The position numbers and the translations under genes were made by a program. From Blastocystis sp. Blastoise (lineage: Eukaryota > Protista > Bigyra: Opalinata), in assembly GCA_039096225.1 (NCBI GenBank), contig JBBPEB010000013.1, positions 1,302,001 through 1,366,000 on the forward strand: a stretch of DNA of 64,000 nt, written 5' to 3'. Shown piece by piece: positions 59,242 through 61,896 of the stretch. The notes under the pieces were generated by a model, which saw only the letters and a list, made by a program, of their open reading frames with translations, was not told the origin of the DNA and ran no database searches. Position 1 is the first letter of the stretch, and the number at the start of each line of letters is the position of its first letter.

Positions 59242-59758
59242 TTAAAAAAATATTCAAAAAGTATTTTCATTTTCTTATTTAAAACTTTATAAAATATGTA
59301 TTTTCTTTTTTTTTAGTAACATATCATTTCCTTTCTATTCATGAATTTCAAGAAATGGTATATTTATACAAAACAGTTGATCAATGTGTAATTTGACAAA
59401 CAATAAAAACTTGATATATATATATTGTATATATTGTTCTATAAAATATAAATAACAAAAAAGAAACAGTTGTTAATCTAAAGATGTCTTTCAAATATAT
59501 TGTATCTCTATAATAATTGTATCGAATTTTTATATTTAGCAAATCAACCCTTAGACAAATCCAAATGAAAGTTTCCTTCTTCATGGCACACATTTTTGAT
59601 TCCCATGAGAATCAATGACAATAAACGGTATTTATGCAAAATTCCCGTTTTGGTATTTGAATAACAATTCAGTCCATAATATACAGTTCAAGGAATTAAG
59701 TCTAACTTTATCAAGATCTACTTTTGTTATTTCTTTATATTATATTATATAATTTGAA

Positions 59759-61062
59759 ATGGATACTGAGAGTATAGTTACAATTGTGGTTGTAGTAGTC
59801 ATCGTTCTTATTATTGTTGGCATTATATTGGGTAGTATAAAAGTTGTTAAACATTCAACAGTCATGATTGTTGAACGTTTTGGTTCTTATAATAGAACAT
59901 TAAGACCTGGTATCTGGGTTATTTGGCCTATTATTGAAAATACTCGTAAGGTAAATTGGAGATATGCTGAGTCTAATTGGGGTGAAATGAAGCAACGCCA
60001 TATAGTTACTGATAGAATTGATATGAGAGAGCATATTATTGATTTTGGTGAACAATCTGTCATTACTAGAGATAACGTTTTAATTAAGATTGATGCTCTT
60101 GTTTATTTCCGTATCACAGATCCTAGAGCTGCTACTTTTAATGTTAATAATCTTCCTGATGCTATTGAATTATTAACTCAAGCAAATATATACATAATGG
60201 TTTGATTGTTTATTTTTTATTATTTTTTATAAAGTTTTTATTATTTTTTATTATTGTTTTAATATTTTTTATTATTTTTTATTATTTTTTATTATCTAAA
60301 AATAATAATAATAATAATTTATATATAAAAGCTACCTTACGTAATCTTATTGCTAAGATTACTCTTGATGAAACATTCTCTTCTCGTGAAGTTATTAACG
60401 AAGAATTATTAAACAAAATATATATATATATGTTTATGTTTATTCTGTTTATATTGTTTATGTTTATTATGTTTATGTTGTTTATTATTGTTATGTTTAT
60501 GTTGTTTATTATTATTTTATATTACTTATATATATAATACTAATATATAATTAACATTATATATAAATAGATTCAATTAGATGCAGAGAGATGGGGTGTT
60601 AGTATAACTCGTGTTGAGATTCAGAATATTATCCCACCTGATGATATAAAGACCGTTATGGAAAGTCAGATTCGAAGTGAACGATTCCGACGTGCGGAAG
60701 TCTTAAAAGCTGATGGTGGCAGAATGAATGATGTTATTAAAAGTAGAGCAGAAGTAGCACAAGTATGTAGTATTATTATTATTATATGTATTATATTTAT
60801 TGTGTTATTTCAATATATTATTTATTGAATATATATTATTTATTGAATATATATTATTATTTATTATTATTATTTATTATATTTTATTAAGTCCTACTAT
60901 TAATATTGTTATAAAAAGTATTAAATGCCGAAGGCTATCGTTTCTCTACTATTACTATGGCTCAAGGAAATGCTACTTCTAAATTATTATTAGCAGAAGC
61001 AGAAAAGAAAAGTATCGACCTTCTTGCTGATGGTATATATTTATTATTATTATTATTAACCA

Positions 61063-61120
<58 letters not shown>

Positions 61121-61122
61121 CA

Positions 61123-61200
<78 letters not shown>

Positions 61201-61371
61201 GCCTTAAAGGACAGTGGTGTCTGTGTGACAGATTACATGGTAGCTCAACAATATATACAATCCCTTGGAGCTCTTCTTAATAATAAGAATAGTTGTGATG
61301 TTTATCTTCTTCCTTCTGATTCCATTCGTACAGTTGGTGAATTAATTCATAAAACACAAGTAGTTGCTTAA
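59759..61371 (+). CDS. Stomatin-like SPFH/Band-7 protein with an N-terminal TM helix
   Basis: IVERFGSYNRTLRPG, QSVITRDNV, TLRNLIAKITLDETFSSRE, WGVSITRVEIQNI, AEG-type 11-mer repeats, YMVAQQYI. Introns 1-2 are non-canonical. Confidence 0.92.
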
Positions 61372-61896
61372 ACATATATATATATATATTCATACTTAAT
61401 ATTAGTTGATGCAACTCTATATATCTTCCTTCTTATATAAATATGTTTATTTTATTTTAATTATATAAATTCTATTGCATTTCTCATTTTATTATATGTG
61501 TTTATATAATAATTCATTCATCTTTTTAAAGTGTTCTTAGTTATTATTAACATAAATGTACTACACACTATTTTTTATTCAACAAACATATATAACCAAA
61601 CACATATAAGATACATAAATAATCATTAAATCAATGAAAAAAAGTCCCAAATAATTGTCTGAATATATATAATTAAAAAAGAAATAAGACAATACAAGTG
61701 TATAGAATAGGTAACAAAAGAGTAAACATATAAAAAATAAAGACTAATAATGATATAATCCTTTAAATTTGAAATAAAAGTATATAAAAAATGAATACAT
61801 ACATATTATATATATATAAAGGAGACATATATAAAGAAAAGATATATAATTAGATTATACTATAGATTCCTAATCTCCTTTCATTTATATAGATCT

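Follow-up and report, generated by a model that had tools for sequence, protein, structure and literature searches.

Introns with non-canonical ends between intact exons in a stomatin-like gene of Blastocystis sp. Blastoise: probable decay of inherited splice-site bases

The gene WA158_004048 of Blastocystis sp. Blastoise raises the question of whether introns lacking the usual terminal GT and AG can still be removed from an intact gene, or whether the sequence, the gene model or the gene itself is at fault. An earlier note on this DNA had claimed that the exons are intact and the SPFH alignment gapless only if two introns end in GC-AA and AT-AG (and a third possibly in GT-AA), and had offered either a spliceosome with relaxed recognition of the terminal dinucleotides or editing-gated splicing as the explanation. 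Blastocystis sp. “Blastoise” matches the published tortoise isolate Rus-B, and the window (the whole stretch of 64,000 nucleotides that was analysed) has a GC content of about 22%, which makes it strongly AT-rich. The gene and its exons are as follows, with residue numbers referring to P0199, the orthologous protein of Blastocystis BT1:

59759-61371, + strand: stomatin-like/SPFH gene WA158_004048, five exons and four introns
59759..60181, + strand: exon 1, 141 codons; N-terminal hydrophobic anchor and first half of the SPFH/Band 7 domain (residues 3-140)
60331..60417, + strand: exon 2, 29 codons; Band 7 profile positions ~95-126 (residues 141-169)
60571..60762, + strand: exon 3, 64 codons, 192 nt; end of the SPFH domain and start of a coiled region (residues 170-233)
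60915..61032, + strand: exon 4, 118 nt in the ancestral register; in the canonical register it starts at 60919
61202..61371, + strand: exon 5, with the TAA stop codon (61369-61371) at its end

Exons 1, 2 and 3 are each open without interruption, the approximately 990 nt of exon sequence contain neither stops nor frameshifts, and the translation of exon 1 is 100% identical to the NCBI protein WA158_004048 (Blastocystis sp. Blastoise, hypothetical). Exon 1 matches the Pfam family Band_7 (PF01145) with 55.4 bits at profile positions 2-94 and exon 3 with 24.2 bits at positions 127-172 (gathering cut-off, 23.6), while the BT1 orthologue P0199 reaches 132 bits over positions 1-175. A contiguous Band_7 domain is obtained in the Blastoise gene with exon 2 in place, an arrangement that requires the odd-ended introns and is absent from the public model. 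Orthologues are WA171_006486 in BT1 and WA588_003803 in NMH, and the Blastoise protein is 57-62% identical to other Blastocystis orthologues; beyond the genus, the nearest named match comes from Paratrimastix (“putative Protein QmcA”). Like stomatin-like SPFH proteins of the bacterial QmcA or eukaryotic SLP-2 type, the product has an N-terminal hydrophobic anchor followed by Band_7, and with homology-guided exons the predicted protein shows nothing out of the ordinary in comparison with them.

The intron boundaries were fixed by homology searches and alignments run exon by exon, with the single exons rather than the joined spliced protein or cDNA as queries. Exons 1, 2 and 3 align with P0199 with zero gap at either junction, and they are likewise gapless against P0200 and P0054 (other organism). 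The agreement of all three homologues places introns 1 and 2 at 60182-60330 and 60418-60570, just as the earlier note had them:

60182..60330, + strand: intron 1, 149 nt, 6.7% GC; GC-AA; interior a 10-nt tandem repeat
60418..60570, + strand: intron 2, 153 nt, 11% GC; AT-AG (or TA-GA / AT-AT); starts with (AT)7
60763..60918, + strand: intron 3, two in-frame registers, 60763-60914 (GT-AA) and 60767-60918 (GT-AG)
61033..61201, + strand: intron 4, 169 nt; canonical GT-AG, phase 1

Thus introns 1 and 2 have neither GT-AG nor GC-AG ends, intron 4 has them, and intron 3 has them only at 60767-60918. A 4-nt repeat (AAGC) gives intron 1 five equivalent registers, from 60180-60328 through 60184-60332, which read AA-AA, AG-AA, GC-AA, CA-AG and AA-GC; GT-AG, GC-AG and AT-AC are all absent, and the CA-AG variant that had been described as a 1-nt shift is one of these five. 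Every canonical rescue of introns 1 and 2 failed, which upholds the claim that no in-phase GT-AG solution keeps the conserved residues. The sole GT (60200) ahead of the first in-frame stop in intron 1 is in phase 0 and the sole AG (60330-60331) needs phase 1, so that the two cannot be paired (GT 60200 with AG 60331), and a GC-AG intron at 60182-60331 loses one base and shifts the frame into a stop codon. A consensus-like AT-AA register for intron 1 (60186-60328) was set aside because it adds two residues at a point where every homologue is gapless. For intron 2, the first available GT (60432) is 14 nt downstream and breaks the frame; its actual start equals the local donor consensus GTATAT except for A instead of G at +1. 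The direct repeats at the boundaries of the odd introns of this gene are AAGC (4 nt), AT (2 nt) and AA (2 nt).

All four introns are rich in simple repeats: introns 1-3 are made of tandem repeats of 10-33 nt, and intron 4 (window positions 61041-61197) is nearly all a (TTA)52 microsatellite. Slippage looks to be what drives intron growth in the tortoise lineage.

Are these interruptions introns at all, and if so, how old are they? We compared the genomic locus of BT1 (subtype 4; L001) with an intron-less contig (L002) that encodes the same BT1 protein. The BT1 introns are GT-AG introns of 30-35 nt, and three of them lie exactly at the positions of introns 2, 3 and 4 (the last with a 31-nt GT-AG intron). 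In L003 and L004, two metagenomic relatives, a GT-AG intron of 30 nt occupies the intron 1 position (phase 0, after ELLTQ), and both also carry GT-AG introns, as BT1 does, at the intron 2 position. Among BT1, L003 and L004, then, all four positions are filled by GT-AG introns of 29-31 nt at the same codon boundaries, and this sharing of positions indicates that the interruptions are inherited spliceosomal introns and not insertions. The comparison also bears on intron 3, where the earlier note had set a GT-AA register beside a canonical alternative. Both registers are indeed in frame, and the canonical one was adopted by the public model; only the GT-AA register, which lies at the ancestral phase-0 position, gives exon lengths (192 nt for exon 3, 118 nt for exon 4) that match BT1.

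The description of the odd ends as differing from canonical ones by G-to-A holds for the three introns and extends to the last bases of the exons, since the upstream exons end in CAG or AAG in the relatives and in CAA or AAA in Blastoise. Because these exon bases changed likewise, the pattern fits AT mutation pressure, and as far as the comparison with relatives goes, one G-to-A drift has altered both the intron ends and synonymous exon sites.

A census of introns in the nine CCT genes of the Blastoise genome shows how far such ends depart from the local norm. At 22 of 30 testable junctions there was a GT-AG intron at zero offset, a further seven proved canonical when doubtful cases were re-read by eye, and one was odd (an automated count with a tolerance of +/-3 residues was overly permissive, its out-of-frame control giving canonical pairs at 21 of 30). 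The 22 canonical introns (loci L017-L025) have the donor consensus GTAT(A/G)T, with GTAT in 21 of 22, and the acceptor TATAG, with T at -3 in 22 of 22. Scored with a matrix built from only these 22 introns, the intron 3 donor reaches 11.7 at 60763, where GTATGT is a perfect consensus, vs. -3.3 at 60767 (GTAGTA). With the dinucleotides masked, the same matrix gives donor scores of 4.9 for intron 2, 6.7 for intron 3 (60763) and 1.7 for intron 1 (60182), so that introns 2 and 3 exceed the 95th percentile of the background (2.5); GCAAAT, the donor of intron 1, is only a moderate match apart from its leading G, and the acceptor scores of the stomatin-like introns are mixed. Two to three odd introns among four in one gene is unusual against 29 of 30 canonical CCT introns, a rate that is also compatible with the gene having been picked out by a reader of the whole genome. 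The one odd CCT intron is:

G000:C34:195427-195548 (L024), minus strand: odd intron of a CCT/TCP-1 subunit gene, 122 nt, flanked by the 8-nt direct repeat GCTAAGTT

Its register options are GC-TA, CT-AG, GT-AA and TT-AG, with GT-AG in none, and like stomatin intron 1 it starts with the GC of the next exon's GCT codon and has an AG one base out of place. A search across the Blastoise genome found no other copies of it, and a transposon origin was rejected for that reason.

Could the odd introns simply be an artefact of the gene model? The public protein (P0053, 303 residues) reads ...ELLTQ-LPY-IQLDAERWG..., with a three-codon exon between the two canonical-looking introns:

60332..60340, + strand: “micro-exon” LPY of the public model, 9 nt; flanked by a GC-AG intron (60182-60331) and a GT-AG intron (60341-60570)

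This model drops 26 conserved residues and breaks the Band_7 match into two stretches, on which grounds we ruled it out; its donor at 60341 scores only -0.4. We judge the micro-exon to be an annotation artefact, seemingly of a predictor confined to canonical sites, and judged by homology the public model of the gene is wrong. Searches of the protein collections and the representative library with exon 1, exon 3 and P0053 returned no transcript-derived Blastoise protein, the public model being the only one found.

A related explanation takes the gene to be dead or dying, or the 303-residue isoform to be its true product, with the odd introns unspliceable or bypassed. The public protein does need only GC-AG and GT-AG introns, and G-to-A changes at splice sites are the disabling hits that one would expect under AT pressure. 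Against the isoform stand the lost residues and the split domain; against a dead gene stands, above all, the state of the exons. Read in its own frame, exon 2 shares 24 of 29 residues with BT1 although synonymous sites are close to saturation (pS 0.74, pN 0.14); it has stop codons in both alternative frames and is under purifying selection. Three splice-end hits would have to be set against zero disabling changes in about 990 nt of exon, although splice ends make up only ~16 of ~216 disabling targets by a rough estimate, so that neutral decay is very unlikely. The earlier note had also asked about an intact paralogue and about silence of the gene. A genome search found no second close stomatin-like/SPFH copy in Blastoise, which makes this a single-copy gene with no paralogue to take over, and the locus is present in two probable RNA data sets, in one of which its share is about that of its exons. 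We therefore regard a dead gene or a micro-exon product as quite unlikely.

The first of these data sets, run X1 (2023; study shared with X3 and X4), is probably the strain's own RNA-seq by the genome authors and contains 0.47 of the sampled words from positions 59400-61800. The share expected is ~0.47 for an mRNA that is fully spliced and has ~270 nt of UTR, and 0.51-0.62 if introns 1 and 2 are retained; the observed share is thus probably about what fully spliced mRNA with UTRs would give. The second, run X2 (a polyA metatranscriptome of a gut sample), contains 0.22 of the words. PMC12129017 names BioProject PRJNA1041441 for the RNA-seq of this strain.

It is also conceivable that the bases are wrong and that the real DNA has canonical ends. 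According to the available text of the genome paper, the Blastoise assembly was made from R9 nanopore reads with Flye and polished with racon and MiSeq reads. Runs of A and (TA)n tracts adjoin the boundaries, each intron could be repaired by a single-base change (with one more G behind 60331, intron 1 becomes GC-AG; intron 2 would need G at 60418 or one AT unit fewer before the GT at 60432), and the gene was picked by a reader out of the whole genome. On the other side, only 1-2 nt separate the odd bases from unique exon sequence, in which polishing with short reads is effective, the roughly 990 nt of exon carry no frameshift, and the “missing G” repair of intron 1 calls for a rare GC donor, found in 0 of 22 aligned canonical introns. 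Independent evidence comes from the essential ribosomal protein gene RPS5/uS7, which has two copies on different contigs:

G000:C1:169900-171800 (L029): RPS5/uS7 copy
G000:C21:957900-959800 (L030): RPS5/uS7 copy

Over 1.9 kb the two share 93.6% identity, with a single synonymous difference in the exons and many substitutions and indels inside the introns. Nevertheless, identical GT-TG, GT-AA and GT-AT introns are present in each copy in addition to two canonical ones, and the GT-AA junction is exact, since exon 3 aligns with residues 37-65 and exon 4 with residues 66-110 of human uS7 without a gap. The same odd ends in two conserved copies argue against both random assembly error and pseudogene decay, all the more because errors at RPS5 would have to involve three different types of substitution at two separately assembled loci. 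We conclude that the odd intron ends are probably real biology, and consider base errors in the assembly unlikely.

Two identical intron-less Ribosomal_S7 reading frames of 164 residues also occur on different contigs (G000:C9:1501-1911 and G000:C12:17118-17528); these may be organellar or bacterial-type uS7 copies.

What, then, could remove such introns? The reading that we find best supported, and more likely than not, is that the odd introns are ordinary U2-type introns whose end bases have decayed and which are still removed at their ancestral sites. A putative spliceosome with relaxed recognition of the dinucleotides, as proposed in the earlier note, thus stands as the best reading. The introns would be ancestral Blastocystis U2-type introns, inherited and grown from ~30 nt to ~150 nt in the AT-rich tortoise lineage, in which terminal G would have decayed to A at -1 of intron 1, at +1 of intron 2 and possibly at -1 of intron 3, with an additional T to C at +2 of intron 1. 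Splicing at the ancestral sites would then yield a predicted stomatin-like SPFH protein of 329 residues. Site choice might depend on the remnants of strong local signals: a donor of the GTAT(A/G)T type that ordinary U1 and U6 would read, a TATAG-like 3' context, a CTAAY-like branch site, and the sharp contrast between exons with 30-39% GC and introns with 4-11% GC; the end dinucleotides would be preferred, not obligatory. Several considerations count against this. In yeast and human, exon ligation fails or is severely impaired when an intron has A at +1 or AA at its 3' end, and about 95% of Blastoise introns retain GT-AG, which means that the ends are still strongly constrained. The moderate fit of the intron 1 donor and the R9 nanopore basis of the assembly weigh on the same side.

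U1 and U6 offer no obvious adaptation. The earlier note had suggested a look for substitutions where U1 and U6, among other factors, contact the splice sites; both RNAs are standard (the 5' end of U1, ACTTACCT, and the ACAGAGA and AGC boxes of U6), no compensating change in either was found, and Prp18 and Slu7 are both present in the Blastoise genome.

If ordinary splicing factors are at work, the ends could still be restored beforehand by A-to-I editing of the pre-mRNA (AU to IU, AA to AI), as was proposed in the earlier note. ADAR2 provides the precedent, creating a 3' splice site by self-editing of AA to AI, and an AA would likewise serve as acceptor here. A single A-to-I change each would turn all three odd ends of the stomatin gene into GC-AG or GT-AG, and some double-stranded RNA could arise by pairing between the (TA)n tracts that lie at the two ends of the introns. 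Two findings weigh heavily against editing. The RPS5 GT-TG and GT-AT introns and the odd CCT intron are beyond A-to-I repair, and no ADAR-type enzyme (deaminase plus dsRNA-binding domain) was detected in the Blastoise genome, where the only A_deamin family member is this one:

G000:C31:58085-59564 (L012, 1342-2821): A_deamin gene, two exons, sole family member in the genome

Its domain begins at residue 54, with 53 residues ahead of it and no Pfam dsrm match, so that by its domain content the gene is ADAT1-like and lacks a dsRNA-binding domain. We consider the editing proposal highly improbable, and do not retain it.

Intron 2, with its AT start, might instead be a minor, U12-type intron. U12-type introns tolerate variant end dinucleotides, and the genome contains a possible U12-like snRNA:

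G000:C24:844725-844868 (L016, 1501-1644): U12-like snRNA candidate, 46.8 bits vs. an Rfam gathering threshold of 53

Although below threshold, this candidate carries the branch-site-binding box GAGTAAGGAAA, and Blastocystis ST1 has abundant AT-AC minor introns, hundreds of minor introns having been reported there (PMC10639083). The earlier note had, however, already remarked that the AT donor lacks the U12 signature, and we concur: intron 2 begins ATATATAT, not ATATCC or GTATCC, and a TCCTTAAC-like branch site is absent 10-20 nt from its 3' end, near which only a TTAAC fragment is found. In both respects it departs from U12-type introns, including those of ST1, and its orthologues in BT1, L003 and L004 are major introns of the GTAG type. 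A U12-type intron 2 is in our view scarcely credible.

A further alternative is a removal route that is blind to the end dinucleotides, in which the ends would be brought together through pairing and short direct repeats, a mechanism proposed for the non-canonical introns of euglenids, diplonemids and Amoebophrya. The boundary repeats are in its favor: the seven odd introns checked have totals of 2, 2, 2, 3, 4, 4 and 8 nt (the RPS5 repeats including TGG and GTGC), vs. a mean of 1.7 nt in the 22 canonical introns. Moreover, positions 2 to 5 counted inward from the 5' end can pair with those counted inward from the 3' end in 19-22 of the 22 canonical introns, as the two consensus sequences are complementary there. 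Introns have more (TA)n tracts at both ends than in their interiors (duplex energy -4.2 vs. -1.5 kcal/mol). End-to-end duplex energies are, however, the same in odd and canonical introns (-4.5 vs. -4.1 kcal/mol, p = 0.39) and the same between an intron's own two ends and the ends of different introns (-4.2 vs. -4.4 kcal/mol), which makes the complementarity a mere property of the shared consensus, and we rejected end pairing as a guide to removal. Moreover, the stomatin introns lie at ancestral positions, and the intron with the 8-nt repeat is no repeated element in the genome. We hold such a route to be very unlikely. It is equally doubtful that tortoise-lineage Blastocystis has a second, dinucleotide-blind form of intron removal beside normal splicing that acts also on the ancestral introns of essential genes; if this were true, it would be the stramenopile counterpart of the euglenozoan and Amoebophrya introns discussed below and would explain the direct repeats at the odd boundaries.

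Consequences for annotation may reach beyond this locus. In the genome paper, the available text gives BUSCO scores of 42-43% for three tortoise isolates vs. 55-61% for human isolates; the term “non-canonical” is absent from that text, and its intron passages do not discuss splice-site ends. We speculate that the low scores of the tortoise isolates may result in part from mis-modelled genes.

The G at +1 and the G at -1 of introns are otherwise among the most constrained bases of eukaryotic genes. If RNA confirms the decayed-end reading that we prefer, then a standard-looking spliceosome accurately removes GC-AA, AT-AG, GT-AA, GT-TG and GT-AT introns, including those of RPS5, and Blastoise would be a natural setting in which to study what further features mark a splice site. 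One parallel is the appendicularian Fritillaria borealis, in which, as Henriet and colleagues are said to have described in 2019, numerous non-canonical U2-type introns occur and the major spliceosome is thought to process their diverse ends; it belongs to another lineage, and its spectrum of end dinucleotides differs from that of Blastocystis. Hemistasiid diplonemids, with their non-canonical introns, and euglenids, with nonconventional or intermediate ones, likewise have introns lacking GT-AG together with an apparently complete U2-type machinery, but extensive pairing joins the ends of their introns, whereas here pairing is weak and equal to that of canonical introns (PMC12621601, PMC4770533). 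In Amoebophrya non-canonical introns make up more than 60% of the total; many of them are introner repeats with inverted repeats of 8-20 nt, and RNA-seq validates them (BMC Biol 2021, PMC7789003). The Blastoise case, in which the odd introns are predicted, differs in that 1 of 30 CCT introns is odd and in that the odd introns are at ancestral positions, form no repeat family and have no extra pairing of their ends. What the two have in common is that intact genes carry non-GT-AG introns with direct repeats at the boundaries (3-5 nt in Amoebophrya), on which gene predictors fail (PMC7789003).
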